Of a stretch of 64,000 nucleotides of DNA, positions 3,513-56,291 are shown piece after piece (positions within the stretch are counted from its first letter, which is position 1; each line of letters opens with the position of its first letter). The position numbers and the translations under genes were made by a program. This stretch comes from Octopus sinensis (Eukaryota): the NCBI RefSeq assembly GCF_006345805.1, contig NC_043001.1:18166001-18230000 (forward strand), given 5' to 3'. Below the pieces are notes generated by a model, which was not told where the DNA came from, searched no databases, and saw nothing but the letters and a program-made list of their open reading frames with translations.

Positions 3513-3905
3513 GGCGCAGGAGTAGCTGTGTGGTAAGTAGTTTGCATACCAACCACATGGTTCTGGGTTCAGCCCCACTGCGTGGCACCTTGGGCAAGTG
3601 TCTTCTACTATAGACTCGGACTGACTAATGCTTTGTGAGTGGATTTGGTAGACGGAAACTATAAGAAACCCGTCGTATATATGTATGTGTGTATATATAT
3701 ATGTGTGTATATGTATGTATGTGTATATGTTTGTGTGTCTGTGTTTGTCTCCCAACATCTCTTGACAACCGATGCTGGTGTGTTTACGTCCCCGTAACTT
3801 AGCGGTACTAGGCTTACAAATAATAAGTCCTGGGGTCGATTTGCTCAACTACAGGTGGTACTCCAGCATGGCCACAGTCAAATGACTGTAACAAGTAAAA
3901 GAGTA
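3513..3905 (+). mobile_element. SINE family 1 (tRNA-like head GGCGCAGGAGTGGCTGTGTGGTAAG...GGTTCAGTCCC, internal (TA)/(TG) tract). Other copies at about 6260-6610, 10055-10910 (cluster), 14565-14960, 17075-17450, 23578-23955, 24220-24590, 27652-27790, 30750-31150, 34036-34365, 38570-38795, 45280-45665, 48800-49120, 52375-52760, 61920-62565
   Basis: About 390 bp unit repeated more than 15 times in both orientations, with A-box-like TGGCTGTGTGG and B-box-like GGTTCAGTCCC. Confidence 0.8.
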
Positions 3906-4269
3906 AAAAAAGAGTACTTAAGGAACTCTATGTATACATGTGTGTATATGTATCATCATTGTCCTTTTAAGATTCAGTTTTCCCTGCTTTCGTTGGTCAG
4001 AGAGTTTTTATTGAGGCAGATTTTCCTATTGCCAACCCTCATCTGGCTCCATGACCAGACACCAGTGGCTGGTGTTTAGGAAGGGCATCCAACTGTAAAA
4101 CCCCTGCCAAAACAGACACAGTAGCCTAGGGTAGTTTTTCTACTAGGCCGGGTCCTATCAGCGATCCTCCCCATTCATGCATGGAAGATGAATGTTAAAT
4201 GATGATGATGATGATAGTATTACCTCTCTTTATGAGGACCTGCTTTATGAGACCCCAGATTTACGAGTT

Positions 4270-4520
4270 TTATTTTTCAAGCACAAGATCCAAATTTTGA
4301 ATGAAGTGCAAGAGTTTCTACTACCATAACAAATGCTTCTGTGTGTTGCCAAGATATTTATAGAGAGCGAAAAAAAAAAAAGCTACTTCTAAGCAAACAA
4401 CTCTAGACTGGTTTTTTAAAGAGAAATCTACAAGTCTGTCTGCAAGTGCTTGTGAATTAGCAATCGTATCTACAAGTGATGGTGTGTGCAAGTCTGATGT
4501 GAGCAAAAGTGATTCAGAAA
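4270..4520 (+). mobile_element. Degenerate pogo/Tigger-like transposase C-terminal remnant
   Basis: Translates to AQDPNFE*SARVSTTITNASVCCQDIYRERKKK...KQTTLDWFFKEK, the DPNFER...IYxEKK...KQTTLDxFF tail typical of Tigger transposases; contains a stop. Confidence 0.55.
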
Positions 4521-5252
4521 GTGATTATAATAGTATTTTTTTTTATAGTAAATGATCTTAACATTCTTTTTACTTTACATAAAATATTCTTTACATTCTA
4601 CTGTTGTTTTATTGCCATCTATTTACAAGTATTATAAATTTCATAGGTGAAATATTTTTCTGGGAACAAATTATGATCGCCAGCCTCGTCTGGCACCTGT
4701 GTCGGTGACACATAAGAAATCACCATCCGAGCGTAGCCGTCTGCCAGCCTCGTCTGGCACCTGTGTCGGTGGCACATAAAAAACACCATCCGAGCGTGGC
4801 CGTCTGCCAGCCTCATCTGGCACCTGTGTCGGTGGCACATAAAATCACCCACTACACTCTCGGAGTGGTTGGCGTTAGGAAGGGCATCCAGCTGTAGAAA
4901 CACTGCCAGATCTGACTGGCCTGGTGCAGCCTTCGGGCTTGCCAGACCCCAGTTGAACCGTCCAACCCATGCTAGCATGGAAAGCGGACGTTAAACGATG
5001 ATGATGATGATGATGATGATGATTGCTACTATGGGAAATTATTGCTCTGCTTTACAAATTTTCACTTTACGAGCGGCCTCTGGGAACAAATTAGCTCGTA
5101 TATCACACACACACACACACACACACACACATTTACATACAGTTTCTCCGATGTGGGGGGCATGTTAGGTTCAACAGATATCTAGGACTAGACTCTGATC
5201 TTTGACATTTCATTAGTTATATGTACTTTTTCGTGTATGAAACTTCAATTAA

Positions 5253-5471
5253 CCCTTTCGTTACCAACCCAGTCAAAACCGGCTCTGGCTCTGTAATACA
5301 AATGTCTTGTTTTCATAAGTTTTGCATCAAAATATACCACCAAACCTTAGTCGCAATTTATATTCCTAATACTAGCTTAATGATAACTAAGTTATTTTAC
5401 TAAATTCTTTGTTATATTTAAAATAATTGAAAGAAACAGAGCATTTCAAAATAAATACAGTAACGAAAGGG
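5253..5471. mobile_element. piggyBac-type MITE (TTAA TSD, CCCTTTCGTTAC TIR); second copy at 28641-28862
   Basis: TTAA|CCCTTTCGTTAC ... GTAACGAAAGGG|TTAA; the 28.6 kb copy shares the internal sequence. Confidence 0.7.
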
Positions 5472-7910
5472 TTAATGCTAGGCTGAGTCGATACATAGTA
5501 TTGTAAGAGCTAAATATTAAGAATTTAGCTCTTACAATATGTGTTGAATAATTTTTTCATTCATTAGTATGTGTGTGTTTGGAGCAAGCAGGAGAAATTA
5601 TACTCAATGCATGAACATACATATTTCATAATCGGCTGTAAAAGTTGCAAAAGTGACTCATGTCCCAAGAGTTTGAGACGTGACAGTCATGAAACTTTCC
5701 TGCCAATTTAAATGCTCATATATGCATACCCATGCATAATATTTGGCCACTCATGTTGTTCATAAATGTGTTCCGTGTATGTATGTTCAATGTGCATTCA
5801 TACATACATCTACACACAGGCCATGTGTTGGGAGCATTTGATGCTTAATAAAAAAAAAAAAAACGAATTAGGGGTTTGGGAATAATGACCACTAATTATG
5901 TATGTGCTTAATATTGGAGAATATGGCTTAATAACCTTTTCTACTCTAGACACAAGGCCTGAAATTTTGAGGGAGGGGGCCAGTCAATTAGATCGACCCC
6001 AGTATGCAACTGGTACTTAATATATCGACCCCGAATGGATGAAAGGCTAAGTTGACCGTGGTGGAATTTGAACTCAGAACGCAAAGACAGACGAAATACT
6101 GCTAAGCATTTCACCCAGTGTGCTAACATTTCTACCATCTCACTGCCTTATTATTACTACTACTAATAATAATATGACTGCTGTCATAGCCCTGTGACCT
6201 TCTTGGATATAGTTAATTATATTCACCACTAACACTAATTTTATCGTTTGTCATTTGCTCATTTCAGTCATGCTGGGGCACCACCTTGAAGGGTTTTGTC
6301 AAGCAAATCAACTCTAGTGCTTACTTTTTTTTTTAAAGTCTGGTACTTATTCTGTTGGTTTCTTTTGCAAACTGCTAAGTTATGGGGGTGTACCCCAACC
6401 CACACCAGTCGTCAGACTGTGATGAGGATAAAGATAAACACAAGGACAAGCTCACCCAGACACACACGACAGGTGTCTTTCGGTTCCCGTCTTCGAGGAT
6501 TTGGTTGATCCGAGGTTATAACAGAAGACATTTGCCAAAGGTGCTGCGGGGGGTGGAATTGAACTTGGAACCATGTGGCTGAGAAGCAAACTTCTTACTC
6601 ACTCAGCCACACCTTCACCTCCACACAAACAAGCCAACATCAAAAAAATAAGACAGAGTGGTAAGGATCTGAACCAATGTAGAGAGAGACATAACATAAT
6701 GTTCACACAATTCTCTGGATTTATTTGACTGTGTTTGCAGTATCATATCTCAGCCACTTCAGTAAAAATAAATAAATGAATAGAAATAAAATATATATAT
6801 ATATACGTGACCGATGCCAGCGCCACCTTGATTGGTTTCCATGCCAGTGAGACATAAAAAGCACCAACCGTCCTTGGCCGTTGCCAGACTCCCCTGGCAC
6901 CTGTGCCGGTGACACGTAAAAAGCACCATCCATACGTGGCCGATGCCAGCACCGCCTTGACTGGCTTCCGTGTCGGTGGCACGTAAAAAGCACCAACTGA
7001 TCGTGGCCGTTGCCAGCCTCCACTGGTACCTGTGCTGGTGGCATGTAAAAAGCACCATCCGTACATGACCGATGCCAGTGCCGCCTTAACTGGCTTCCGT
7101 GTTGGTGGCACGTAAAAACCACCAACCGATCGTGGCTATTTCCAGCCTCCCCTGGCACATAAAAAGCATCCAGCTGTAGAAACACTGCCAGACCAGACTG
7201 GAGCCTGGTGCAGCCTCCTGGCTTCACAGACCCTAGTCGAACCATCCAACCCATGCCAGCATGGAAAACGGACATTAAACGATGATGGTGATGATATGTA
7301 AAAAACAAAAAAAATAGCATTGGCATGATTGCCAATCTCCCAAATGCCAGTAATATAGACTTTCTGGCCAACTGTTGGCACATCTATTTTCATGTGATCC
7401 CTCTTTGGAAACAATTAGCTTAAGTGCTCTAGAATTTTTTTGCTTCTTTATTTCCTTTTTAATAAGCAGTAGTTGTTCGATATTGCTGCGATCACCACCA
7501 CCACCGCCACTATCAATGCTTGTAATGCCATCATCACCGACCACACCCACCGTTTCATCTAACTCATCACCTTGCCAATGGTGGTATATTATCCCTTGAT
7601 CGTATCTTCCTCACAACTTACATCTGCCACTACTCCTCTCATCACAAACACCGTCAATATTGTTATCACTGTAGCTTTACTGTTTACCATATAAACAACA
7701 GTGCTGTTATTAAACAGTTAATTGTGCGTGCAACACCACCATATAACCACTTATAATGGTGATGCTACCCTAATAACCACCACACCACTAACACAATATG
7801 CCTTTTATCTATTACTTGTTTCAGTCATTAGATTGCGACCATGCTGGGGCACTGCCTTTTAGTCAATTGAATCCGCCCCAGTTCCCATTTTTTTTAAAGC
7901 CTAGCATTTA

Positions 7911-8235
7911 CGAGGGGCGTTCAATAAGTAATGCCCTGACCCACTTCCCATAGCAGTAGAGCAACGAAACTTGGCACAGTTATTAGTCTTTTTCTACATA
8001 GGAACCACCCAGAGTTACGCATTTCTCCCATCGTTTGATGCGGCTCTGGAGACCGTTTTTGTAGAAGACCCCAGCTTGGTCCTCCAACCTCAACGTGACT
8101 TCAGAAATCAAGGCTGCATCATCTGGGAAACGCTTTCCTTTCAAAAACAACTTCATGATTGGGAAGAGGTGAAAATCAGAGGGTGCAAGGTCAGGAAAGT
8201 ATTCTGTCTGTCTTTTTTCCCAAACTACTAAGTTA
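7911..8235 (-). mobile_element. Mariner transposon 3' fragment (transposase C-terminus plus TIR)
   Basis: Minus-strand YFPDLAPSDFHLF...RIKRWEKCVTLGGSYVEKD* carries the mariner YSPDLAPSD motif; TA followed by TIR CGAGGGGCGTTCAATAAGTAA at 7909. Confidence 0.85.
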
Positions 8236-10604
8236 CAGGACTGCACTGGTTGTCAGGCGGTGATGAAGATAAACAAACAAACACACAGACACACGTATAC
8301 ATGTATTTATATACACAACGGGCTCTTTTCAGTTTCTGTCTACCAAACCTATTCACAAGGCTTTGGTCAGTCCATGGTGCTGCACTGCGGGACTGAACCC
8401 ACAACCATGTGGTTGGAAAGCAAACTTCTTATTTTTTGACTGCCCACAAGGGGCTACACACGGAAGGGACAAACAAGGACAGACAAACGGATTAAGTCGA
8501 TTATGTTGATCCCAGTGCATAACTGGTACTCAATTTATCGAACCCGAAAAAATGAAAGGCGAAGTTGACCTCGGCGGAATTTGAACGCAGAACGTAACGG
8601 CAGACGAAATACCTATTTCTTTACTATGCACAAGGGGCTAAACACAGAGGGGACAAACAAGGACAGACAAATGGATTAAGTCAATTATATCGACCCCAGT
8701 GCGTAACTGGTACTTATTTAATCGAACCCAAAAAAATGAAAGGCAAAGTTGACCTCGGTGGAATTTGAACTCAGAACGTAGCGGCAGACAAACTACCACT
8801 AAGCATTTCGCCCAGCATGCTAATGATTCTGCCAGCTCGCCGCCTTCTCACCACACAGCCACACATGTTTGCAAACCACCTAGAGAACCACTTCATTGTT
8901 TGTATAGTCTGCTAGAAATAGCACCTAAATTCCCTTCAAACTAATGCAGGCACGGGTGACTTTTACAAGAAGTGGGCTGCATGAGATATGGCTCACTATC
9001 AAGCAGGCTGCACTGCCAAAATAATTCAGGGTGATGATTTTTATTAGACATGCCGTTCAGCAAGGCTCATAGGCCATGGATTGCCCATGGTTGCTTCAGT
9101 GTCATCGTCATCATCATCATCGTTTTAGTGTCCACTTTTACATCTTTGGATAAATCAGACAAAATTTGTTGAGGCAAATTTTCTGCAGCTGGACGCTCTT
9201 TTTGTCACCGACCCTCACCATTTTCCAAGTAAAAATGGTATTGTTTTCAAATTTTGGCAACCAGGGAGCAGATAAGTCGATTACATCGCCCACAGTGCAT
9301 GACTGGTACTTATTTTATTCTCTCTCCCCCCTCACTGAAATCACTGTAGTCCTTGACAGAATATGGACGAAATGCTATTAAACGTTTTGCCCAGCATGCT
9401 AATGATTCTGCCAGCTTGCTGCCTTCGAGTAAGGTAATATTTCATCTTGGCCAGATCTGTTTCCATGGAAACGGCACTGCTTGCGTGATAGCATCTCTCA
9501 CTCACAATTATCATGTGATGTGAAAACAAGGGGATATGCACACACGCACACACACACACGTGTGTGTATTTGTATCTCCTTGTCTTCACATCAAAGAAAC
9601 CCTATACGCACACATGCATGTTTGTGTGTGTGTGTGTGTGTGTGTATAATAGGTTTCTTTCAGTTTCCATCTACCAAATCCTCTCACAAGGTTTGGGGTC
9701 AGCCTGGGGCTATATGAAAAAAGAAAAAAGAAAAGCACTTGCCCAAGATACCACAGAGTGGAACTGAACCCGAAACCATGGGGCTGGGAAGTGAACATCT
9801 GAACCACACACCCATGCTTGCGTCTAGCATCTTTAAAAAAAAACCGGAAGAATGAAGTTAATATATTTCTACATAGAGTGTATCTGAGAGAAGACAGAAT
9901 AGTCAATTACTGGATCTTAGCTCTGCTTGTTCTGTACTAGCAACCATCTAAACCAGTGATTCTCAACTAGGGTTCGTATGGCCCCTTGAGGACCTTATAA
10001 AATTTTGTTAAAATATTTTCAGTTTTTTTTTTTTTTTTTAATATGGTATTAGGGGCAGGCATAGCTGTGTGGTAAGAAGCTTGCTTCCCAACCACATGGT
10101 TCCGGGTTCAGTCCCACTGCGTGGCACCTTGGGCAAGTGTCTTCTACTATAGTCTCAGGCTAACCAAAGCCTTGTGAGTGGATTTGGTAGATGGAAACTG
10201 AAAGAAGCTCATATATATATATATATCTTTTACTTGTTTCAGTAATTTGACTGTGGCCATGCTGGAGCACTGCCTTTAGTCGAGCAAATTGACCCCAGGA
10301 CTTTGTAAGCCTAGTACTTTATCTATCGGTCTCTTTTGCTGAACCGCTAAGTTATGGGGATGTAAACACACCAGCATCAGTTGTCAAGCAATGTTGGGGG
10401 GACAAACACAGATATATACACACACACATACATATATATGACGGGCTTCTTTCAATTTCCATCTATCAAATCCACTCACAGGGCTTTGGTCAGCCCAAGG
10501 CTATAGTAGAAGACACTTGCCCATGGTTCCACGCATGGGACTGAACTCAGAACCATGTCATTGGTAAACAAGCTACATACCACAAAGCCACTCCTGCACC
10601 TATA

Positions 10605-16810: not shown

Positions 16811-16986
16811 ATTCTCAACAAAGAAAGCCTATCTGGTCACCTGCAAAAACCAAAAGCCATGAAAGCTCTAAGACCAAAGACAACATAAGTGATTCTGACA
16901 CAACAAACAAAGAACAAACCATGCAGACACCAGATTCAGAATCCCACATTGAGCTTCGAAGGGGACGTAGTGCACGATCAGTACAG
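16811..16986 (+). CDS. First recognisable coding exon (A) of the homeodomain/TFII-I/chromodomain gene: (D)SQQRKPIWSPAKTKSHESSKTKDNISDSDTTNKEQTMQTPDSESHIELRRGRSARSVQ, a disordered S/K/T-rich segment
   Basis: Polypyrimidine tract ending TTTTTTACAG at 16810; CAG|GTCAGT donor at 16987; open frame; phase 1 to 0, matching the next exon. Confidence 0.75.
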
Positions 16987-20232: not shown

Positions 20233-20403
20233 AATAACTCTGTTGATCAAAGGCCTATTCGCAGATGTTCGGAATTCAATGACACACAGCTGGCCTTTCT
20301 AGAGTCACAATGGCAACTAGGAATGGTGTCCGTGTCCCGTGACTGTTGGAAGATGATTGACGATACTGCTGAATGTATTGGAATTTCATCAGCTCGAGTA
20401 AAA
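20233..20403 (+). CDS. Exon B: helices 1-2 and start of helix 3 of an HDX-type divergent homeodomain (NNSVDQRPIRRCSEFNDTQLAFLESQWQLGMVSVSRDCWKMIDDTAECIGISSARVK)
   Basis: TCTTTACAG acceptor and AAA|GTAAGT donor, phase 0 to 0. The F-x-D-x-x-L-A-x-L-x3-W-x2-G-M-x-S-x4-C-x3-I-x3-A pattern matches the HDX homeodomain as I recall it. The intron falls at the common homeobox position just before the helix-3 xW. Confidence 0.85.
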
Positions 20404-22079: not shown

Positions 22080-22644
22080 TTGGGTTGTCCAGAAAGTTTG
22101 TGCCGATTTATAGCAGCTTACCTTTCGACTTATTTTAGAACATGGTTGAGTCCGTAAAATTGAATTTGACTACACCTCCATTTAGAGCACAGTTTAAGCT
22201 AACTTTTTGTGGAAGAAGGTTTATGTTCCTATAACCTGTCTTAATTCTGTAACCCTTTAAAATGGAAAATAAGAAAGTTCATTTTCGGCACTTGATGCTT
22301 TGGGAACCAGACAAAAATTGCTGCAGCTCAGCTGGGATGTGTTACCTCACCCTCCATATTCACCAGATATGCTCCTTCGGATTTCCACTTATTCAGGTCT
22401 CTGCAGAATAGTCTTTATGGTAAAAATTCCAATTCCTTAGATGACATAAATAGACATCTTCATGAATTCTTTGCCATGAAACCACCTCAATTCTGGGAAG
22501 CGGGTATTTTCAAGTTAAAGGATAGATGGAGACGCATTGTGCAACAAAATGGTTCATATTTGGTTGATTTAAAATGTAATGGCAAGTATTTATTGACCTT
22601 TTTATTTCCTTTAAAAATTGGCACAAACTTTCCGGACAACCCAG
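22080..22644 (+). mobile_element. Internally deleted mariner with both 30-bp TIRs and TA TSD
   Basis: TA|TTGGGTTGTCCAGAAAGTTTGTGCCGATTT ... AAATTGGCACAAACTTTCCGGACAACCCAG|TA. The N-terminal MENKKVHFRHLMLW is joined directly to the C-terminal WDVLPHPPYSPD/APSDFHLF...RWRRIVQQNGSYLVD. Confidence 0.9.
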
Positions 22645-23352
22645 TATTATACTACTAATCCTTCTGCCAGCAAATACTAAGAAAAATGATTAAATAAAAA
22701 GGAAACACTAAAGTTCTATTAATTTCTTCTCTTGTTACTTCTTTACTTTCATCTCTATTTCTTTTCTACCCTTTTCCTTTTTTGCTCTTGTTAGCCCCAT
22801 GTAAGCCCCTTGTAAGAACTGATAGAGCAGAACTATAACCAAATGTATTCTAGTCACTGTTACCTTTTTTATTCCGAAAACAATTAGAACTACATTTCCC
22901 AAGTGTCCTTTTTCTTTTCCTTTCTTCAAAGGGTGTATGATACAAAGCAGATTTGACTGCTATTTCTAACATGTTGAATGACCACATAGAAACAGCTGCA
23001 TTGGATTTACAAAAACTGTTTCTCTCTCTCCCTCTCTCTCTCTCCCTCACCCTCTCTCTCTCTCCCTCACCCTCTCTCTCTCTCCCTCCCCCTCTCTCTC
23101 CTTCTCCCTATCTCTCTCTCCCTCTCTTTTTCTCTCTCTCCCTCTCCTCCAACTCTTTATTCTGTACTATTTAAAATATTCAAATTCTCAAAGCATATTT
23201 CCATAAATATTACTTTCATCTCTCACACACTCTCAGATTTGCAACTTTGGCATACACACACACACATTGTCTAAATGTCCAGCTCTGTTTTAAATCATTT
23301 CTCCACTCTTCCAAGAATAAAACTTATTGTTTTTTTTACCCAATTTTTCTAG

Positions 23353-23446
23353 CGGTGGATCCAAGAATACAGCAAAGCTCATGGTTTAGTCATAGATGAA
23401 CCTGTCACTAGAAAACGTAAATTATCAGAATCCAGAAATACAGATG
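23353..23446 (+). CDS. Exon C: remainder of homeodomain helix 3 plus a basic NLS-like motif (RWIQEYSKAHGLVIDEPVTRKRKLSESRNTD)
   Basis: TTTTTCTAG acceptor and ATG|GTTTGT donor, phase 0 to 1. Supplies the invariant helix-3 Trp in register with exon B (RVK|RW). Not in the ORF track. Confidence 0.8.
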
Positions 23447-25424: not shown

Positions 25425-25609
25425 ATTTTGGTTCCGATACTGGAGGTGAAGAAAATGAAGAACTTGAGAGTGCGGCGAAAAAGAGTAAGAAAAGTCCATC
25501 TAGAAGCAAGACCAAAGAAAACAGAGAGACGACGGACAAAAAAGAGACTAACCGGAACCAGAACAAGCGTGAACAAATTGTGGGGTTACTGGGGAAACTC
25601 AGCCACACT
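25425..25609 (+). CDS. Exon D: acidic/basic linker and start of a TFII-I-type leucine zipper (...NKREQIVGLLGKLSHT)
   Basis: CATTTTATAG acceptor and ACT|GTAAGA donor, phase 1 to 0. The C-terminal EQIVGLLGKLSHT resembles the DEIITSLVSALDSM segment of GTF2IRD1 (recalled). Confidence 0.8.
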
Positions 25610-26693
25610 GTAAGATCCATTTCCATCATCATCATCATCATTATCATCATCAGTTGAAGCATTTGAATATTGCAATGTTTTTAAGAACCCCTTTAGAATT
25701 GTGTGATGAAATAATTGCTTAACCGATTGAGTCCTGTTGTTAATGTTCCTGTTTATGTTTGTTCATTAGCTCCACTCAGTTCTGTTCTGTGATAACAAAT
25801 ATTTTGGATGGGAACACCACTGCATTGACCTGTTGCTATTGTTTTGCATAAATCTTCATGTTGTTGTGGAAGCAAGCTGGTCTCAGATGTTCAAAACATG
25901 ATTTCTTCGGTCTTGGTGTTATGGTGTCATTGAGACCCAAAGGTGCCTTATGACTTAATTCTTCCTTTCACACCGTCTCCGATGAAAGGTCTTGGTGTTA
26001 TGGACATCTTAGACATACTACAGTAGCCGCAGGACAGTGTTGCCCTCTCCAGACCCATCGTAGCAGTTGGTCACAATGTTCATCATCATCGTTTAACGTC
26101 CGCTTTCCATGCTAGCATGGGTTGGACGAATGACTGAGGGCTGGTGAACCAGATGGCTGCACCAGGCTTCAATCTTGATCTTGCAGACTTTCTACAGCTG
26201 GATGCCCTTCCTAATGCCAACCACTCCGAGAGTGTAGTGGGTGCTTTTATGTGCCACCGGCACAGGGCCAGTCAGGCGATGCTGGTAACAATCACACTCG
26301 AATGATGTCTTTTACATGCCACCGGCACGGAGGCCAGATAGCCGCTCTGGCAACGATCACGCTCAGATGGTGCTCTTAATACCCTACTAGCATGGGGCTC
26401 GAGTGCCAGAAAGGTGATGCTGGTAATGATCACGCTCAAACGGTGCCTTTTAAGTGCCACTGGCACGGAAGCCAGTTTGCCAGTCTGTCAATGATCACAC
26501 TCGTAGTGTTGTCAGCTAATAAATCATTTGTCACTTATATTCTACTGTTGATGCTATTTACTGCAGTAATTTATTTTTATCTCATGGTAGCTATTTTCAG
26601 CTAAGGCAACCGATCATTTGCGAATCACACCTATCTTGAACATGAATGCAATGCTCTGCAGGTGGCTGGATATGAACCACCAACCACCCTGCT

Positions 26694-26985
26694 GGAGGCA
26701 CATGGCCTAGTGGTTAGAGCAGCGGACTTGCGGTCGAGAGATTGTGGGTTCGAATCTCAGACCAGGCGATGTGTGTGTTTATGAGCGAAAACACCTAAGC
26801 TCCATGTGGCTCCAGCAGAAGGTAATGGCAAACTTCTGCTGACTCTTTCGCCACAACTTTCTTTCACTCTTTCCTCCTGCATCTTGCAGCTCACCTGCGA
26901 CAGACCGGCATCCCGTCCAGGTGGGGGAACCTATATGCCAAGGAAACTGGCCCTTATGAGCCAGGCGTGGATCGAGAAGGAGCAA
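26694..26985 (+). mobile_element. tRNA-derived SINE (family 4). Related heads at about 53063-53295 (+), 45908-46045 (+), 63295-63432 (-), 17880-18120 (-)
   Basis: A-box TGGCCTAGTGG and B-box GGTTCGAATC followed by non-tRNA body; dispersed copies. Confidence 0.7.
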
Positions 26986-27319
26986 ACAAAACAAACAACC
27001 CTGCTGGTTGTTAGTTATCCTATCCACTTTGCCATCTACATTTTCATAAAAGAAATACAAACTATCACCCGGGGAATCCATGCAATGATCTTCTTTACCA
27101 TTTGTAACCAGAGTGCTTTACTATCTGAGCCAATTCCCCAACTGATAATGCTATGCCATAGACGCACTAACACTAAACATAATCATATATTTACTGAGAT
27201 TCACTCAACTTTAGCATTGGTTTGTTTGTTGTTTTTGTTCCTGTTCCTTTTTTTTTTTTTTTTTTTGTCATGTCTTCCTAATTAATTACTGAATTGTTCC
27301 TATTATAAATTATTTTTAG

Positions 27320-27461
27320 TGTTCATCATTGTCATCTCTTGGTGTTGAAACTGCCTGTCTAGCTGTCAACAAACCAGTTGTTTTCACACTAGGTAGTAAA
27401 TATGGTACAAACTTCCTTAAAAAAGAAAAGCAATTACAGAACAAATTTCTTGCCTACTTAG
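27320..27461 (+). CDS. Exon E: TFII-I family N-terminal leucine-zipper/dimerisation region (CSSLSSLGVETACLAVNKPVVFTLGSKYGTNFLKKEKQLQNKFLAYL)
   Basis: TATTTTTAG acceptor and TAG|GTTGGT donor, phase 0 to 1, 142 nt. Aligns without gaps over 47 aa to GTF2IRD1 [47 protein letters not shown] (recalled), with 20 identities by hand. Confidence 0.85.
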
Positions 27462-28357: not shown

Positions 28358-28435
28358 CCAAGGGCAAAGATCAGCCCAAAAACAATCGTAAGAAGCTTGC
28401 AGAAGAAGTGAAGGCCTTATTCAATGAGAAGTTTT
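28358..28435 (+). CDS. Exon F: start of a GTF2I (I-) repeat (AKGKDQPKNNRKKLAEEVKALFNEKF)
   Basis: TTCGTTTCAG acceptor and TTT|GTGAGT donor, phase 1 to 1. LAEEVKALFNEKF matches the I-repeat first helix (LRKQVEELFNEKY). Confidence 0.85.
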
Positions 28436-29099
28436 GTGAGTCCATTTTCATAACACTTTATTTCAGATTTATAAAAGAGTCACATACACACATTCAAATT
28501 ACATCTTATCATTTGGATGGTGGGGAGAAGGAAACATTCCGTGATGTTGCACTGATGTAGAGGCTCCTTCTTTAGTTATGAACTGTGACTCTGATTACCA
28601 GAAGAGATCATATTTGTTAACTTGGTGCTGGAGTCCTTAACCCTTTTGATACCAACCTGCCTGAAACCGCCGCTGGCTCTGTAGTACAAATGTCCTGTTT
28701 TCATAAGTTTTGAATTAAAATCTTCCACCAAACCTTAGTCACAATTTATGTTCCTAATACTAGCTGAATGATAACTAAGTTATTTTACTAAATTCTTTGT
28801 TATATTTAAAATTAATTGAAAGAAACACAGAGCATCTCAACAGAAATACAGTAAAAAAAGGGTTAAAGCAGTCTAGTGAATTCCCAGTATTGCTCTGACG
28901 ACTCCTGCATCTCAACACGGATACCATATCCTTTCTTTAGATTACATCAGTGTTGAAGAGAGTATGAACCTATTTCGGTTTTCATTTAGGCATATTGGGT
29001 CATTTGATAGTAAAGTATGCTTATATTGTATTATTCTACAAGGCTGCATTACTAGTAATCACTAAAATACCTATTGAAGGCTTAGCGAGCCTTCAATAT

Positions 29100-29468
29100 T
29101 GCAGAATCACCTCCCTCCGACAAGTCACCCTAACGTGACGTCTGCGTTAGCTGGGTCATGCCCTCCGTTGTTAGCCAGGAGAATTCATCTACGAAGCAAT
29201 TGCCCCAGCTCCCCTTCAGGGTTGGCGAAAGCGATGTGGTGGACAACGAAAAACCTGGCTGATGACAGTCAAGGCTGATCTGGAACCTAACCTAGGTCCC
29301 CATATCTACGGCGTTCGCCGCTGGAATAAGGAGTGGTTGGAGATCACGCGGTCGTTAGCCTCAAATTGCCAGGCCTTGTCGGCGTTTGTGAGAGATGCAG
29401 CATTGAGGATGTATGAAGCCAGCTCAACCCACCCCGGGTGCATGCTGTCTCAAGTCAAGTCAAGTCAA
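29100..29468 (+). mobile_element. RTE-clade LINE 3' end fragment with a (CAAGT)n tail
   Basis: Translates to (R)WLGHALRC*...GWRKRCGGQRKTWLMTVKADLEP...RRWNKEWL...SAFVRDA, then TCAAGTCAAGTCAAGTCAA. Confidence 0.7.
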
Positions 29469-29668
29469 AATACCTATTAGATTTGGTGGGTGGGATCCAG
29501 TTTTAAAAGAGAAAACGTTAAAAATATTTTGGAAGGAAAAATAGCTCCATTTGAAATTTCTGATCTTGGTTTTTGTATTTACTGAAATTGGTTCACCTTC
29601 ATATTAATTGCTGGTTTCCTTCAACTGTATTTACACACCCAATAATCTTGGCAATATTCAACTTTTAA

Positions 29669-29978
29669 CCCCTTACCCAACAATTATTTTGAAAAATAAA
29701 TGTATTTTTTCAGACATATTTTTTAATTGTTTTATTTTACTATGTTTTGAATGGTGATTTCGAGGTATATTTCAAACCTTATTTATTATGAATTTTAATT
29801 CAATAATATTGATTTTAAATTACCGCTTTGGGCAGAAACGAGTTAACCCGTTTTTAGACGAAGGAACTCGTTTGCTGACGGTTTTGGCGAGTCTATCTTT
29901 TGACGAGTTAACTCGCCAGAGATAGAAAAAAAACGATTTCGGTCAAAACGCATATATTCGTTTCTGCCGGGTAAGGGG
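29669..29978. mobile_element. piggyBac-type MITE (TTAA TSD, CCCCTTACCC TIR)
   Basis: TTAA|CCCCTTACCC ... GGGTAAGGGG|TTAA. Confidence 0.7.
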
Positions 29979-30069
29979 TTAAAACTGTTAATCTTCCACT
30001 TTCACTCTTCTCTTTATCTATATATCTATCTATTCTGCTCACTTATTTTCTTCTCCTTTTTGCTACCAG

Positions 30070-30247
30070 CTTTATGTTGCGGCAGTACTCGGACCATGCC
30101 ATATGTTAAACTGGAAAAAGATCCTATGTTTATCGACATTGAAGGCTTCCCGGATGGCATTATCCTAAAAAGACCACAGTCCTATGGAATATCGGATCTT
30201 CGGAAAATTTTAAATGCTTCTGAAAAAATCCAGTTTCACCTAAAGAA
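30070..30247 (+). CDS. Exon G: body of the GTF2I (I-) repeat (SLCCGSTRTMPYVKLEKDPMFIDIEGFPDGIILKRPQSYGISDLRKILNASEKIQFHLK)
   Basis: Long pyrimidine tract then CTACCAG acceptor; GAA|GTAAGT donor; phase 1 to 2. PY-x8-I-EG-x-P-x-GI-x3-RP-x2-YGI-x2-L-x2-IL-x5-I-x-F matches the I-repeat signature (VPY...[26 protein letters not shown]...IRFVIK). Confidence 0.9.
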
Positions 30248-32532: not shown

Positions 32533-32666
32533 TCCACAGCCAAACAAAAAGAAAGTCACTTCTAACCCGACGCCAAAGAAAGAAAATACGAGTACAGAAT
32601 CCACAGAGAACAATTTACCGCCTCCTACTTTACCTGCTCAGTCCAATGACACACAACCTAATAAAG
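32533..32666 (+). CDS. Exon H: P/T/S/K-rich disordered linker (NPQPNKKKVTSNPTPKKENTSTESTENNLPPPTLPAQSNDTQPNK)
   Basis: TTTGTTTGTTCAG acceptor and AAG|GTGAGA donor; phase 2 to 1, which bridges exons G and I exactly. Confidence 0.75.
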
Positions 32667-35279: not shown

Positions 35280-36116
35280 ACCTCCGAACAAAATCAGACA
35301 GTTTTGGTAATAGTGGCAACAAAAGGAATAATTCCACTCCTCCTCCACCTCAGCTTGAACCTGAACGTCCACAACTTGAGTTGAACATGGATTCAAAGAC
35401 TAAACCAGATCAAGTTCCAAAATTTGGTACAGTTGAGCCTCAGTTCTCAACGTTACCAAAAGCCTTTCAGACTTCAGGGAACACTCCAGGAAGTGAGTCT
35501 TTCTTACACAGTTCGTATATGACTACAAATTCAAACACGGGTTCCCAGGCACAAAACCCCAATAAATCCTTACAAATGAGACAAAGTGCTGCGTTTGGCA
35601 GCAAGCCCATTGTCACAAGCCCTGCATTCTTGCAGCACAGAACTACTTTCGGTTCTGGGAGCAGTCGCCGAAAAGCTCTAGAATTAGCACGCTCAGAGCA
35701 GAAAGCTCTGGAAGAGAAATCTAAAAAGGCTGTTGAGACACTGAAACCTGTTGAGCAGCCCAAGACTGATTTTCAGCAGAATTCGGACAGCAAGTCTGTG
35801 GCCAAATTTGACATCAGTTCAAGATCTGTTGAAGCTTCCAAATTTAAACCAATTGATTCAATGCAATTCAAACCTATGGAGAGCCCTAAGTTTAAGGGCA
35901 TAGAAATTGCTAAATTCAAACCTATAGAGAGTGCTAAATTCAAACCAATGGACAGTAAGTTTAAACCTGTAGAAACGACCAAATCTGACAAAAAATCTTC
36001 TGACAGTGTTCTTGTTGAAAAGAAAAAACCTGAAACACCAAAATCTCAAAAGAAAGAATCAGAAAACACAAAATCACAGAAGTCTAAAGATTCTGATGGC
36101 AAATCAGGAACTGAAA
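35280..36116 (+). CDS. Exon I: 837-nt disordered S/K/P-rich exon containing a short coiled-coil-like stretch (RRKALELARSEQKALEEK) and six KFKP-type repeats
   Basis: Longest non-repeat ORF in the window (35264-36130). TTTTTATTTCAG acceptor and AAA|GTAAGT donor, phase 1 to 1. Confidence 0.85.
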
Positions 36117-40477: not shown

Positions 40478-40866
40478 GCCGGCAGTTTGTTCCATACTTC
40501 AGCAACTCTTAGCGTGAAAAAATGTTTCCGAAAGTCATGGGGGCTGTGCTGTTTTCTGACTTTGTAACCATGCCCATGGGTGTTAGATAGGTGGAGTTTG
40601 AAAAGGTGCTCAGAGTTATTATTTGTAAGATGGTTAATAATTTTATGGGTGTCTACCAAGTCAGCTGCCAGATGTTAGAGTTTCAATGTATCTATGCCCA
40701 GGGAAGTAAGGCATTCAGAATATGCCTGATGGAGGGTATTCTCTTGGTTGCACGTTGCTGAACAGTTTCCAGATGATTAATATCCTGGGCAAGATAGGGG
40801 TTCCAGACCGGTGATGCAAATTCCAGGTGAGGCCACACCATAGCTATATAAAGCCTCAGATAGATA
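40478..40866 (-). mobile_element. CR1/L2-type LINE reverse transcriptase C-terminal remnant (frameshifted)
   Basis: LYIAMVWPHLEFASPVWNPYLAQDINHLETVQQRATKRIP...THGHGYKV...RKHFFTLRVAEVWNKLP. Confidence 0.85.
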
Positions 40867-41167
40867 GCCGGAGAGCAGCTCACAAAGGACTTGGTAATAA
40901 GTACTTCTGTAATAAGTACAGTCTGTGAAAATGTGATTAAGAACTCAATCGGGGCTAATGAATGTGTGGTAGACCTTATATTAATATATGTTTGAAGATG
41001 TTGACATTGTTGTTCTAAAAACTTATGAACGCTCTTGTTAGATTGCAGATAAACCATGGTGAGTATCACAAAACTTGCTACCCTCCTGCCTACTTTTCAT
41101 GCAACCACTTTGCTCTTTTAATTATTCAGGTTTCATAGAACTAAATTTGCTCACTTGTTCACACATA

Positions 41168-42933: not shown

Positions 42934-44728
42934 TGTTAGATTAAACGAATAGCCGATTGTCATCATCATCATCATCATTTAGCGTCCGTTTTCCATGCTA
43001 GCATGGGTTGGACGGTTCAACTGGGGTCTGTGAAGCCAGAAGGCTGCGCCAGGCCCAGTCTGATCTGGCAGTGTTTCTACGGCTGGATGCCCTTCCTAAC
43101 GCCAACCTCTCTGCGAGTGTAGTGGGTGCTTTTTACGTGCCACCTGCACAGGTGCCAGACGGAGCTGGCAAACGGCCACGAACAGATCGTGCTTTTACCT
43201 GCCACTGGCACGGGGTCCAGGCAGGGCTGGCAACGGACACGAACGGATGGTGCTTTTACGTGCCACCGGCACGAAGGCCAGTCGGGGCAGCGCTGGCAAC
43301 GGCCACAATCGGATGGTTTGCTTAAACCACAGCTGCAATTTCCATTGATGTTGATCGACTTCGATTTTGGTTCTGCTCTCTGATATCTGATTTGATTTGG
43401 TTTGATTGTGTATGTGTATTTCAAACCTGGGTTGGATGGTTCTACAAATTTTGATTTTTGCATAACCATTTAGATTATACAGGACAAATGGCTGGATCTG
43501 TAGAATTTCAGACAGAATAACTTGTGGTATTTCTCAGTTCAAATCCCATCATCCAGGTTCAGTTTCCTTTTAATCCTTTTAGTCAATAAAATAAGTACTG
43601 AAGGTCAATGAACTCAACTACAAGTTAGAAGCTGGTGCTCCTGTGTGGCCACAGTCCAGAGACTGGAAATGATTTTTTAAAAATACTGTTCATAGCACTA
43701 TCATAGGTGGATTATCCATATTTTCAGTGGGAATAGGCTACCTTGGATAGTCCAATCTACAGTACAATAAGGACAGATGTGCTAAACACAGACAATTATG
43801 GTTGAGCCTGTAGAGATGTTTGAAATCATAGAGTTCCAAAGGAAGGATTAAGAGCCAGGAGACAAGAAAAGCCCTTTGTAATATTTGTTGAATGTCAACA
43901 TCATCAGGAGTTAGATAATTCATACATTGTTGCAAGAATTGTTTAATATACCAAAAAAATCTTAACTTTTCCTCCTATCATTGTTTTTTAAATGAGAACC
44001 ACTTGTAATTTCAGAATTGTGTTCTCACAACCAAATTGGAGCGGCTGTGGCTTGGATGCCAATCGAACCCTCTAGAATTTTCCATTAGCTTCTTTCGTGT
44101 CTTGAGTCTGCTTCGTTAAAGCTAATCATCATCATCATCGTTTAACGTCCGCTTTCCATGCTAGCATGAGTTGGACGATTTGACTGAGGGCTGGCGAACC
44201 AGATGGCTGCACCAAGCTCCAGTTTTGATCTGGCAGAGTTTCTACAGCTGGATGCCCTTCCTAATGCCAACCACTCCGAGAGTGTAGTGGGTGCTTTTAC
44301 GTGCCACCGGCATGGGAACCAGTCGGGCGGTACTGGCAATGACCTCGGTCGAATCTTTTTACACATGCCACCAGCACAGGTGCCAGTAAGGTGATGCTGG
44401 TAACAATCACGCTCGAATGGTGCCCTTTTACATTCCACCGGCACGGAAGCCAAAAGCTATTTAACAACAACAATAGCAACAGAAATGATATCCTTATCAT
44501 TTTTATATTTAATGTCTGTATAATGGAATCCAAGATTCATGATATCTGCAGCGTGTCTCCTTCTCCCATTACAATTATTTTCTGTAGTCTTAGGATCTGG
44601 AACTCAAAGAAGAAGCTTACAAGCAGATGCAATTCAATGGTTGTTTATTTTAGTTCTCATTTGTGTGGCTCGTTCCCGGTGACAGCTCATGGTTCATTGT
44701 TCTGTTTTTGATTTGACGGTCATTCAGA

Positions 44729-44943
44729 ATGCTCACAGCAGCCATATTCCTACCGCTCTATGTCACGCTGGTGAGACCCATATTGGAGTACGGGATTCAA
44801 GCCTCTTCTCCTTATCTCCTTAAAGACATACATCATCTCGAAAGAGTCCAGAAGCTGGCAACCCGCATGGTTCTTGGTCTCAAGCATTTGTCTTATGAAG
44901 AAAGGCTGAAGACGCTCGACCTTTATTCTCTCGAAAAACGACA
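44729..44943 (+). mobile_element. CR1/L2-type LINE reverse transcriptase C-terminal fragment
   Basis: LYVTLVRPILEYGIQASSPYLLKDIHHLERVQKLATRMVLGLKHLSYEERLKTLDLYSLEKR. Confidence 0.85.
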
Positions 44944-47072
44944 ACCGGTGAAGTTAGAGCAGGATAAGAATCTGCTGTGAGATGCCAGCTGGCAGTGTTT
45001 CTCAGCGCAAGTGAGAAAGAGAAGAGAGACTGAATGCCTTAATACGCCTGCTTAAATAGTCATTGGCGACGAGATCTTGCTCTTATCTCAGACATGGCTA
45101 TGGCTGCCAGCGAGATCTTGTACAAAATGGTACTGGCTTCTTGTGTCACGCTACACCTGTTTTGTACACCTATATGAATTATGTCGGTGTATTTCTGTTA
45201 CGGCTATCAACGTATGAATTCCATATAAATGGGTTAGAATTGAAGATGAACAGAGCAATATTCAACCGAAAGAATCAATAGGCGTAGGAGTGGCTGTGTG
45301 GTAAGTAGCTTGCTTGCAAACTACATGGTTCCGGGTTCAGTCCCACTGCGTGGCACCTTGGGCAAGTGTCTTCTACTATAGCCTCGGGCCGACCAAAGCC
45401 TTGTGAGTGAATTTGGTAGACGAAAACTGAAAGAAGCCCATCATATATGTGTGTGTGTGTGTGTGTGTGTTTGTCCCCCCAACATTGCTTGACAACCGGT
45501 GCTGGTGTGTTTACGTCCCCGTAATTTAGCAGTTCAGCAAAAGAGACCGATAGAATAAGTACTAGGCTTACAAAGAATAAGTCCTGGGGTCGATGTGTTC
45601 AACTAAAGGCAGTGCTCCAGCATGGCCACAGTCAAATGACTGAAACAAATAAAAGAGAAAGAGAGAGAGTAAAGCTGTGTGGTAAGAGGTTTGCTTCCGA
45701 ACCACATGGTTCCAGGTTCAGTCCCACTGCATTGCATCTTACCAAAGTGTTGTGAGTGGATTTGGTAAGCAGAAACTGAAAGAGGCCCACCGGGCAAGCG
45801 CACGTGTGTGTGTGTTATGATTTTGCTTAGACATGGTGATACTAATAACCAGTTGTTAGTACTCTATATACATGTGCTTTAGAATAAAGCATTAAGTACA
45901 ATTCATGACGGCACATGGCTCAGTGGTTAGAACATCAGGCTCGCAATCATGAGGTAGTGAGTTTGATTCCCAGACCAGGCTGTGTATTGTGTTCTTGAGC
46001 AAGACGCTTTATTTCACGTTGCTCCAGTTTACTCAGCCGTAGAAATGAGTTGCATACACACACACTTCCAGAGTTTGGACAAAATAATGGAAACACCTTA
46101 AAATTTCAAACAAATTTATTTTAATATTGGGTAGGACCGCCTTGAATTCTATGAGGTGTTGGCCTTTGCCTTTCCCTGGGATAATATTTGTGTCATGGAT
46201 AGGAGAGGCTGGTATGCATGGGCACCTGCCAGTCTTCCATAAACAATCTTGCCCAGACTTGTGCCTCAGAGGGTAACTTTGTAAGTGCAATCCCATGGTC
46301 ATTCATGACCGATGCAGGTCTTTACTCCTTACAGATCATAATATTGATTATTGAGTGACAAGGAACCGGAATTAGGGAGGGAGAGAGAGAGATATAGTCT
46401 TATTTTGTAAGAGTCTTTTAATGCTTATAAATACTCACACTGATTGCTGTTTTTGTTGTTACTTAGAGTTCCAAAAATTTTCAGTACAAAGATGGACATA
46501 GCTGTGTAGTTAAGAAGTTTGTTTCATGATCAGACTGTTCTAGGTTCAATCCCTCAACATAGCACCTTGAGGAAGTGTCTTCCACTGTCGCCTGAGCCAA
46601 CCGAAGGCTTGTCGAGTGGGTTCAGAAGACAGAAACTGAAAGAAGCCTGTTTTTTGTGTGTGTTTGTGTCTCTTTATCTTGGCATTTTACTCTAAGTATA
46701 AATGAATGATGTACTTGCTAATATGCAATCTGCTGTAAAAACATGTCCGGCCATCATACTGTTATTGTTTGAAAGTGTATATAGAAAATACTACCTTGCT
46801 TGAAGATAGGTGAATGTTGGTGACAGGGAAAGCATCAGGTCAGAGAAAATTTACTTCAGTGAATTTCACCCAATACATGCAAGCATAGAAAAGCCGATGT
46901 TATGATATTGTCACCATGGATACCAATTTTTCTGGTGACCTTCATGAACTGTTTAAATTTTGGGGATTATGGCTAAAACCAAAGTGACCATGTTGTAGGG
47001 TTTGATACAACAATATTAGTTTCTTCTCATGGTTTCGGATTGAAATTCTTACTAAACGTGTGTGTGTGTGTC

Positions 47073-51152: not shown

Positions 51153-51605
51153 TCATCATCATCATTGTTCGACCGTGGTCGAGACAATGGAATTTACCAT
51201 GCTACGCCAGACTTCACGGTCCATCATGGCATTACGGAGGTCCTGTTGCTGGATGCCTGTATCCCTGGAGATTACATCAGGGTAGGATAGTGTGCGCCCT
51301 CTGGTATCGCGAGCAGATGGCTTCCAGAGGAGAAGAGTAGAAGTTACCTGTTTTTCAGCTCTACAACAATGTCCAGCAAACTGGACTCTCCTACCTTTCA
51401 CAAGAGATGACACAGGTGGTAGTTTCCCATATATTTGCATTTTGGTTGGATGGTGCTTCCACGAGAGATTTTGAGCTCTCATAAGGAGGCGAGTGTAGGT
51501 TCCATCCAACCGCCTCTCAAGCTTCTTTGATAACGTCCAGGTTTCTGAGCCATATAGTAGAATTGGTTCGACTGTGGCTTTGAAGATACATGGTACAATG
51601 GCCTG
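51153..51605 (-). mobile_element. RTE-clade LINE 3' end (intact reading frame to the stop) with a (GAT)n tail
   Basis: FKATVEPILLYGSETWTL...RRVQFAGHCCR...LLWKP...RGR...AMMDREVWRSMV, followed by ATGATGATGA. Confidence 0.9.
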
Positions 51606-52841
51606 TAGCATGAGCTTGTTTGGAAATTACAGCTATATGGGGAATGTGTTAAGCCTAGCCATTTGTTAGAGAATACATCATTTGATTTATCTCAGTTGTG
51701 TATTGTTTATAAGGAGTAATAGTGTTGTGTTGTAGGTTTGTTTCTTTGAGATGTAAGTCTCTGTTTTTTAGTGCAATTTGTGTGTCTGTCTGTGTGTCTA
51801 TCTATAGTTGTGAGAATTGTTACCATCTCCTCTTCTAACGTTACACATTCTATTGTTAGTCTAACTCCAGATCAGCCCTGATAAACAGGCTTGTTGATCA
51901 GAGGCATTCCAGCCTTGGCCATCCCTTTTATTCATTTAGTTTTGATTATTATTATTTTTTTTTTCTCATTCAGATAGAGTGTAACTAGGACTTCATTATC
52001 CAATATGTCAGTATGTTGTTCCTTTTATTTTATGGTTCTAGGGAGTGGTTTGAGAGAGATTTAGTTTCTATTTCATGCAGGTCGGTCAGAGTGCCATGTT
52101 GAGAAACCCTCATTGGTAGGTAGTACATTGTTGTGTGTCAGAGGGTCAAACAAAAAGTTAGTAACATAAGTAACAGTCATGATTGGAGGTTGATCTCACT
52201 CTCTCTCTCTCTTGCACAAACAGAACAGCAAATATTTCCATCAAAGTCAGCTCACCAAAGACTTAAATTCTGGTTCCTCTGATGAGTGTGAGCGATCTCA
52301 TCCTGACTCTTGTCTTCTTTCGTGATAATCTATCATAGCTTCAGTTTCCCTATCAATATATATTTGTATATATAGGCGCAGGAGTGGCTGTGTGGTAAGT
52401 AGCTTGCTAACCAACCACATGGTTCCGGGTTCAGTCCCACTGCGTGGCATCTTGGGCAAGTGTCTTCTGCTATGGCCCCGGGCCGACCAATGCCTTGTGA
52501 GTGGATTTGGTAGACGGAAACTGAAAGAAGCCTGTCGTATATATATATATATATTTGTGTGTTTGTGTTTGTCCCCCTAGCATTGCTTGACAACCGATGC
52601 TGGTGTGTTTACGTCCCCGTCACTTAGCGACTCGGCAAAAGAGACCGATAGAATAAGTACTGGGCTTACAAAAAGAATAAGTCCCGGGGTCGATTTGCTC
52701 GACTAAAGGCGGTGCTCCAGCATGGCCACAGTCAAATGACTGAAAAGAGTAAAAGAGTATGTCATGGTCTTGATAAATACACATCACATAATCAGGGAGA
52801 ATACATTTTGCCTCTCTGCATTCATCAGTATCTTCATTTAA

Positions 52842-56157: not shown

Positions 56158-56291
56158 GTGAGGTTTTTATTGTAGAGAAAGTCTTAAAGAAACGTGTGCA
56201 GAAAGGTCATCAAGAGGTTTTGGTCAAATGGAAAGGTTACAGCAATCGTTACAACTCATGGGAACCAGTGGACAACATTTTCACCATGTAA
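56158..56291 (+). CDS. Terminal exon J: Polycomb/CBX-like chromodomain (EVFIVEKVLKKRVQKGHQEVLVKWKGYSNRYNSWEPVDNIFTM*)
   Basis: Strong pyrimidine tract then TTTCCAG acceptor, phase 1; TAA stop at 56289-56291. Has the classic xF/YxVExI...LVKWKGY...NxWEP chromodomain motif. Too short for the ORF track. Confidence 0.85.

Follow-up and report, generated by a model that had tools for sequence, protein, structure and literature searches.

A single GTF2I-type repeat on two exons in a probable octopus homologue of the TFII-I family with a predicted homeodomain and a chromodomain

The stretch of DNA considered here, which will be called the window, comprises 64,000 nucleotides (nt) of the genome of Octopus sinensis (contig NC_043001.1, positions 18,166,001 to 18,230,000) and contains, at positions 28358-30247, a GTF2I-type repeat (I-repeat) divided over two exons. 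This is probably the sole repeat of a vertically inherited, multi-domain homologue of the vertebrate TFII-I proteins, a reading that takes in the mechanism and the history proposed below. The protein, encoded at locus LOC115211899, is built up in the order low-complexity N-terminus, predicted HDX-like homeodomain, TFII-I-type N-terminal ('leucine zipper') domain, one I-repeat, a disordered, lysine-rich region of about 330 residues and chromodomain. All of its exons lie on the + strand.

The first exon of the repeat (exon A, 28358-28435; 78 nt) encodes a basic stretch and helix 1 (KNNRKKLAEEVKALFNEKF). Read and translated directly, it is bounded by an AG acceptor (...tttcag) and a GT donor (AAG TTT T/gtgagt, the slash marking the splice site) and finishes with ...LFNEKF plus one base, so that the intron dividing the repeat (28436-30069; 1634 nt) is in phase 1. 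The second exon (exon B, 30070-30247; 178 nt, phase 1 to 2) carries the repeat body between an AG acceptor (...ctaccag) and a GT donor (...CTA AAG AA/gtaagt), and is left in phase 2. Spliced together, the two exons yield an 85-residue peptide, KGKDQPKNNRKKLAEEVKALFNEKFSLCCGSTRTMPYVKLEKDPMFIDIEGFPDGIILKRPQSYGISDLRKILNASEKIQFHLK. A preliminary description of this DNA had proposed a single I-repeat with a phase-1 intron after FNEKF and a second exon of 178 nt from phase 1 to 2, which the direct reading bears out; as checks it had suggested a scan with the Pfam profile PF02946, a structure prediction and a phylogeny of the repeats. The intron between exons A and B holds a GC-richer, transposon-like insert at about 29080-29480, judged by eye, for which Pfam gave no match.

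Against PF02946 (GTF2I-like repeat; cut-off 27 bits), the spliced peptide scores 63.7 bits (E 2e-17) over profile positions 2-75 of 75, and the full-length protein of O. bimaculoides 56.6 bits. The peptide also matches ten solved I-repeat structures by sequence, the best with E 1.4e-11. The core G-[LF]-P-x-G ... P..Y ... L..IL is intact, and the alignment places the invariant P41 and P49 and the nearly invariant G18, Y25, G39 and I60 in the octopus repeat, the identity of which to vertebrate repeats amounts to 25-43%. Compared with vertebrate repeats, the octopus loop that connects helix 1 to the first strand, SLCCGSTR--TMPY, lacks two residues; it had been supposed that such a loop would account for an exon of 178 nt instead of the vertebrate 184 nt, and the two-residue gap in the alignments fits exactly (184 - 6 = 178).

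The octopus repeat is also predicted to adopt the fold of the solved I-repeats, with helices and a short two-stranded sheet. An AlphaFold2 model of the zipper domain and repeat has a mean predicted local distance difference test (pLDDT) value of 87.3, and when this predicted structure is compared with the PDB by Foldseek, the ten best matches are all solved GTF2I domains (E 4e-7 to 1e-4; root-mean-square deviation 1.7-2.4 A; target-normalised template modelling score (TM-score) 0.65-0.77). The same comparison gives a weak match of the whole model to the structure of an NRF1 homodimer on DNA (8k4l_B; E 0.045, Foldseek probability 0.75); the similarity to SRF and MEF2, both MADS-box proteins, is very weak.

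The repeat stands alone. All 64 kb were scanned in six frames with two hidden Markov models (HMMs), one made from 4 sequences and the other refined over two rounds with all repeats recognized among the proteins retrieved. The score of exon B is 70.7 bits, whereas the segment that comes next reaches an E value of 0.63; neither model found a second I-repeat in the window, the intron at 36.1-56.1 kb included, in line with the earlier statement that no further I-repeat exon is present. A single repeat is likewise found in the full-length O. vulgaris protein and in all cephalopod full-length proteins examined. Multiple I-repeats (2-6 per protein), a trait of the TFII-I/GTF2I family, are thus not found in the octopus protein.

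Relatives were sought in two ways. A word-index search with the 85-residue peptide gave no match, one with the repeat alignment returned short vertebrate fragments only, and a third gained paralogues from the annelid Capitella teleta and one transcript and did not recover the cephalopod proteins themselves. An exhaustive phmmer search of 1.8 billion proteins with the 58 residues of exon B gave 61 matches, among them a protein of 1242 residues that matches the query at 100% identity and has one repeat, at residues 816-873, and two further single-repeat proteins at 77% identity. Two of the 61, a bacterial SLH protein (P0037) and an Hcp protein (P0057), were set aside as false positives. According to this search, there is one copy of the gene per cephalopod.

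Homology with the vertebrate proteins extends beyond the repeat. The exon at 25425-25609 is a linker that ends with the first helix of the TFII-I-type N-terminal domain (REQIVGLLGKLSHT) and is followed by a phase-0 intron; the core of this domain (CSSLSSLGVETACLAVNKPVVFTLGSKYGTNFLKKEKQLQNKFLAYL) occupies the exon at 27320-27461 (142 nt). Together, these segments 5' of the repeat align collinearly with the zipper region of vertebrate GTF2I, GTF2IRD1 and GTF2IRD2. An HMM made exclusively from vertebrate sequences (14 N-termini) finds the exon at 27320-27461 in the six-frame translation with E 1e-7, and the limits of the alignment are the ends of the exon. In the AlphaFold2 model, the 'leucine zipper' (25560-27461) is part of a compact domain of helix, beta-hairpin and helix (pLDDT about 90) and not a simple coiled coil.

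The exon structure tells the same for both domains. Vertebrate structures were derived from the genomic loci of a protein of the fish Albula (zipper and first repeat, R1) and of woodpecker GTF2I. Four intron positions are common to octopus and vertebrates, all with the same phase, three of them exact and one a codon off. The first, in phase 0, lies directly before the Cys of C..L....E.AC.AV, in the same column in Albula; the second, in phase 1, follows the zipper exon, which measures 142 nt in octopus versus 139 nt in Albula, hence the offset of one codon; the third, also in phase 1, follows K[FY] where helix 1 ends; and the fourth, in phase 2, follows the repeat body exon (178 versus 184 nt). 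It seems unlikely that a match of four introns came about by chance. That vertebrate repeat bodies lie on 184-nt exons from phase 1 to 2 had been stated in the preliminary description, and four such exons are indeed present in woodpecker GTF2I. The woodpecker gene (Melanerpes formicivorus) has seven I-repeats in all, since its R1 exon pair, a 132-nt exon and a body exon, has been duplicated almost identically (exons 3-4 versus 7-8).

On these sequence grounds, the octopus gene appears to be truly homologous to the vertebrate TFII-I/GTF2IRD1 family, as an invertebrate relative that was inherited vertically. It shares with TFII-I (GTF2I) and GTF2IRD1 a zipper domain followed by an I-repeat, the predicted fold of that repeat, the same two-exon structure of the repeat and the same introns around the zipper. 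It differs from them in having one repeat instead of five or six (seven in woodpecker), and in the addition of a predicted HDX-like homeodomain upstream, a C-terminal chromodomain and a long low-complexity N-terminus. GTF2IRD2 and the Albula protein KAI1903715.1 resemble it in another respect, as they have few I-repeats (two or one) behind the same N-terminal domain and are fused to an unrelated C-terminal module. However, that module is of the transposase or DUF3504 type and not a chromodomain, and both proteins are derivatives of vertebrate GTF2I, nested in the vertebrate R1/R6 clades.

Orthologues are known from three Octopus species, one cuttlefish and one decapodiform transcriptome. As identified by cluster look-ups, they are XP_029636503.1 of O. 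sinensis, XP_014770978.1 of O. bimaculoides (LOC106869674, annotated 'uncharacterized'), CAI9722904.1 of O. vulgaris, which UniProt names 'Chromo domain-containing protein', CAE1255533.1 of the cuttlefish Acanthosepion pharaonis, and a protein encoded in a decapodiform transcript assembly, the sequence of which is nearest to that of the cuttlefish. The domain architecture is the same in O. bimaculoides, A. pharaonis and the decapodiform transcript. Mapping of the cephalopod proteins on the window by tblastn and a splice model gives ten exons, all bounded by AG and GT; ten is a minimum, as the gene begins upstream of the window, where about 555 low-complexity N-terminal residues are encoded. 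The in-window translation of 709 residues is 100% identical to CAI9722904.1 and XP_029636503.1. Between octopus and Sepia, identity is 94% for the zipper exon, 89% for the chromodomain, 75-77% for the I-repeat and 72% for the homeodomain, versus 40-55% for the linker exons, which argues that the domain exons are under selection.

In one respect the preliminary description has to be corrected. It let the gene end at an in-frame stop near 36.13 kb, but a GT donor at 36116/36117, five codons ahead of that stop, joins the preceding exon to a chromodomain exon that begins at 56158, and an end near 36.13 kb is therefore rejected as the main model. In both O. sinensis and O. bimaculoides, X2 isoforms annotated at NCBI have no chromodomain and end in ...GTENCR.

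The terminal exon (56158-56291), about 20 kb past the previous one, encodes the chromodomain (EVFIVEKVLKKRVQKGHQEVLVKWKGYSNRYNSWEP...) and the stop codon. It matches Pfam PF00385 at 52.7 bits (threshold 25.1; E 3.9e-14) over profile positions 1-40 of 53, without the C-terminal helix, and the same holds for Sepia and the decapodiform transcript. The aromatic cage positions F, W and Y are present in EVFIVEKV...KWKGY, as judged by eye. The octopus domain therefore resembles chromodomains of the HP1/CBX type in its Pfam match and its cage, and differs from them in the missing C-terminal helix and in the absence of a chromoshadow domain.

The putative homeodomain is spread over two exons upstream of the zipper. 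The first (20233-20403) encodes helices 1 and 2 and the start of helix 3, and ends in ...ARVK at a phase-0 intron; the second (23353-23446) encodes the rest of helix 3 (RWIQEY...) and a basic KRK stretch. The cephalopod motif reads CSEFN[DE]TQLAFLESQW..GMVS......I..TAECIGIS.ARVK/RWI. Its best sequence match in the PDB is the HDX structure 2da4 (E 1.1e-3 with a single sequence and 2.2e-4 with a profile; 27% identity, a weak match), followed by many homeodomains below threshold. Pfam gave only weak, sub-threshold matches of this segment to HTH_23 and HTH_28. The AlphaFold2 model has three helices (pLDDT 78), and its top 50 Foldseek matches are all homeodomains, though with E values of 0.16-0.5; among these fold matches, 2da4 has the highest query-normalised TM-score (0.69). 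The octopus domain is further like HDX in that it would be an atypical, long homeodomain with a W..GM.S insertion between helices 1 and 2. Neither I-repeats nor a chromodomain are known in HDX, which in 2007 was listed among the human homeobox gene families without invertebrate orthologues (PMC2211742).

Relatives with related architectures occur in other invertebrates. The crinoid Anneissia japonica has a protein, XP_033122800.1, annotated 'zinc finger protein 665-like', with four near-identical I-repeats and at least ten C2H2 fingers. Each of its repeats is split by the same phase-1 intron, here after ...NSKY, at the end of helix 1. It differs from the octopus protein in its four repeats, in their 162-nt body exons from phase 1 to 1 and in the C2H2 array that stands in place of the chromodomain, and no zipper domain was detected in it. 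The likeness extends to the N-terminus, which has a homeodomain-like helix-turn-helix (HTH) with an intron of the same place and phase. In a profile alignment, this crinoid N-terminus (LLKTLEEFWHQGMV...IMVK/NWI) and Capitella P0179 align to the octopus homeodomain, and a phase-0 intron between VK and [RN]WI, which we take to be at position 46/47 in standard homeodomain numbering, is common to the octopus (VK/RWI) and crinoid (VK/NWI) genes. The crinoid HTH alone gave no match in the PDB. The relatedness of the octopus and crinoid homeodomains, as suggested by the profile alignment and the common intron, is to be regarded as moderately and not strongly supported.

In Capitella teleta, P0176 has HMG-like and zipper-like regions and one complete repeat. 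A locus of the same animal (KB311685.1, about 2150-7400) holds a tandem array of units, two of them full and two partial, all composed of an N-terminal domain and one repeat body; the annotation of the '3-repeat' protein ELT88798.1 may merge several gene units into one, or duplicated 171-nt exons of phase 1-1 may be used. The phase-1 intron in the Capitella repeat lies about five codons further 3' than in octopus. In a transcript, P0177 (Logan SRR34486197 contig 18679), an HMG box and a zipper-like domain are combined with one I-repeat, so that it may represent a further lineage with a single repeat. ELT88798.1 and its paralogues and P0177 thus resemble the octopus protein in having a TFII-I-type N-terminal domain followed by one I-repeat, and differ from it in their partners, which are HMG-box-like and/or homeodomain-like, with no chromodomain. 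At least the Capitella entries already carry domain annotation of an automatic kind. In Capitella P0178 (CAPTEDRAFT_192830), an I-repeat body is joined to CxC1/CxC2 cysteine clusters of KDZ transposases, and in the Albula goreensis protein KAI1903715.1 (P0038), the zipper and R1 are joined to DUF3504; both fusions could be real domestications or chimeric gene models.

Neighbour-joining trees of the repeats (74 aligned columns, 300 bootstraps) group the cephalopod repeats together with 99%, those of the crinoid with 98% and those of Capitella with 100% bootstrap support, while all vertebrate repeats form one clade with 60%. The vertebrate R1 clade is the sister of the remaining vertebrate repeats. 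The cephalopods fall with a subset of the vertebrate repeats in only 9% of the bootstraps, and exactly with R1 in 0.3%. None of the outcomes by which the preliminary description would have been refuted was therefore observed: there are no further repeat exons, the match to PF02946 is strong, and nesting among vertebrate repeats is rare in the bootstraps. This topology and the one-repeat units in Capitella and P0177 fit an ancestor with one repeat and separate expansions in vertebrates and the crinoid. The module of N-terminal domain and one I-repeat would then be older than the split of protostomes and deuterostomes, and the repeats would have multiplied independently in vertebrates (five to six) and in a crinoid (four). 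The preliminary description had suggested that the zipper with one repeat may be the pre-expansion unit. The part of this that stands is that the octopus segment is collinear with the vertebrate N-terminus and R1, with conserved introns; one-repeat ancestry as such is not established, and one repeat as the primitive number is plausible but unproven. The ancestral unit was probably more than zipper and repeat, because in the proteins of cephalopods, crinoid and annelid alike the repeats are preceded by an apparent HDX-like homeodomain.

As to its function, the octopus protein may be a chromatin-associated transcription regulator. The TFII-I family is characterized by binding to DNA elements of the Inr, E-box or GGATTA type and by transcription activity that depends on signals. 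The N-terminal domain would serve in dimerization by analogy with GTF2IRD1, in which the N-terminal region mediates this process (PMC3493543). DNA would be contacted by the homeodomain and/or by the I-repeat with its preceding basic stretch, again by analogy, and the chromodomain would dock on methyl-lysine histone marks. Isoforms without the chromodomain could then uncouple the binding of DNA from the docking on histone marks.

A number of points weigh against the reading of the octopus gene as a single-repeat TFII-I homologue with this history and mechanism. The match of its homeodomain to HDX is weak, and a BLASTP comparison of the octopus homeodomain with that of the crinoid gives no significant match. 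DNA binding by the octopus repeat is attributed to it by analogy, and only some vertebrate repeats reportedly bind DNA, as is said to follow from studies by Vullhorst & Buonanno and by Palmer et al. In sequence, the octopus repeat is furthest from GTF2I R1 (25-26% identity) and closest to R2 and R5 of GTF2IRD1 (40-43%), so that its equivalence to R1 is positional and not based on sequence. The repeat tree is short and weakly supported (74 columns, neighbour-joining distances, 60% support), with thin taxon sampling. Finally, the distribution is patchy, with cephalopods, an annelid, a crinoid, one Ciona gene (PMC8122590) and vertebrates; absences elsewhere are an unreliable guide, since the sole exhaustive search used a 58-residue query and weak relatives in other phyla would have been missed.

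With regard to mechanism, gene and ancestry could be as described and the I-repeat could nevertheless be a module for protein-protein interaction, the homeodomain alone contacting DNA. We hold this for possible, though not for the likelier case. Several vertebrate I-repeats do not bind DNA, and the octopus protein already has a dedicated DNA-binding fold in its predicted homeodomain. Partners of the family include PIASx-beta, HDAC complexes and ZMYM proteins (PMC3493543). On the other hand, the conserved GxPxG...P..Y...L..IL core of the octopus repeat is intact and a basic stretch, KNNRKK, lies directly 5' of helix 1. Basic regions are found near the DNA-binding repeats of TFII-I as well.

With regard to history, a single repeat could also be the outcome of reduction, the bilaterian ancestor having had several repeats of which the cephalopods (and annelids) kept just the one beside the N-terminal domain. 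Multi-repeat proteins do occur on the deuterostome side, with four repeats in the crinoid and five to six in vertebrates, the monophyly of the vertebrate repeats reaches no more than 60%, and the octopus repeat is nearer to R2 and R5 of GTF2IRD1 than to R1. Yet the crinoid repeats are near-identical and make up one clade (98%), and are therefore recent, and no invertebrate repeat clusters with a particular class of vertebrate repeats. Moreover, one-repeat units come from three independent invertebrate sources, namely the cephalopods, Capitella (P0176 and the units of the tandem array) and P0177. Secondary loss is thus rather unlikely, and an ancestor with one repeat is preferred.

More radically, the I-repeat might be a mobile or shuffled module, carried by transposons and recruited independently into unrelated genes, in which case the octopus gene would be no orthologue of GTF2I. 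This would account for the patchy distribution, for partner domains that vary by lineage (homeodomain, HMG box, zinc fingers, chromodomain) and for the fusions with KDZ CxC1/CxC2 clusters in Capitella P0178 and of zipper and R1 with DUF3504 in Albula P0038; the transposase-derived C-terminus of vertebrate GTF2IRD2 is a further case in its favour. We nevertheless regard it as improbable. Octopus and vertebrates have four intron positions and phases in common over two adjacent domains, octopus and crinoid share the homeodomain intron, the exhaustive search gave one copy per cephalopod, and the domain exons are conserved among cephalopods, and a chimeric gene model in a draft assembly may underlie the Capitella fusion. 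As for vertebrate contamination or a recent horizontal transfer of a GTF2I fragment, for which only the literature view of the domain as vertebrate-specific (PMC9900109, PMC10721858) can be adduced, it is rejected as extremely improbable, given that identity to any vertebrate repeat is only 25-43%, that the exons sit in a ten-exon gene amid octopus-type repeats, that the orthologues span three species of Octopus, one cuttlefish and one decapodiform transcriptome, and that the cephalopod clade lies outside the vertebrate repeats.

A wider scenario may be put forward, though tentatively and as one that we would not yet expect to hold. TFII-I and GTF2IRD1 would derive from an ancient bilaterian gene with an HDX-type homeodomain, a zipper and a single I-repeat. 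The cephalopods would have kept this linkage and added a chromodomain, the vertebrate genes of the GTF2I family and possibly HDX would be separated remnants of it, and vertebrates and crinoids would each have acquired their repeat arrays on their own.

The remaining exons encode disordered or linker segments. The first in the window (16811-16986) belongs to a disordered region (DSQQRKPIW...) and agrees at 100% identity with the proteins of O. vulgaris and O. sinensis. Downstream of the repeat, a linker exon at 32533-32666 (PQPNKKKVTSNPTPKK...), placed by the splice model, precedes a long, disordered, lysine-rich exon at 35280-36116 with short KFKP peptide repeats. These take the forms SKFKPIDS, QFKPMES, KFKGIE, KFKPIES, KFKPMDS and KFKPVE, and are also present in the decapodiform orthologue. 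Fragments of open reading frames at 29175-29477, within the intron that splits the I-repeat, and at 22296-22655, 7986-8252, 51165-51626, 40695-41096 and 44717-44977 look by eye like pieces of the C-terminal part of ORF2 of long interspersed nuclear elements or of mariner-type transposases, and a Pfam search of these transposon-like fragments in the introns gave no match. A repeat resembling a short interspersed nuclear element, which translates as ...LQLDALPNANHSESVVGAFY..., is dispersed over both strands of the window.

TFII-I has been described as vertebrate-specific (PMC9900109, PMC10721858) and I-repeats as unique to the TFII-I family (PMC3493543), and a Pfam-based survey counted a single GTF2I gene for Ciona robusta, with no such gene in either amphioxus or C. 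elegans (PMC8122590). No paper on a protostome I-repeat protein was found in the searchable literature, nor did a search for the determinants of DNA binding by I-repeats (GGATTA) yield anything usable. The octopus homologue is visible in public databases, yet it is undiscussed. Domain and family were known before; what is new is the protostome position and the architecture, in which a predicted homeodomain, a zipper, one I-repeat and a chromodomain are united.

For the cognitive, social and craniofacial features of Williams-Beuren syndrome, the main candidates are the genes for TFII-I and GTF2IRD1, and a cephalopod homologue with a conserved exon structure would move the origin of their common module back to the bilaterian ancestor. 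The octopus protein offers a natural 'minimal' version, with one repeat, in which the roles of a single I-repeat and of the N-terminal domain may be probed. That the I-repeat is linked here to a predicted homeodomain as well as to a chromatin reader suggests that its original role may have been at chromatin.

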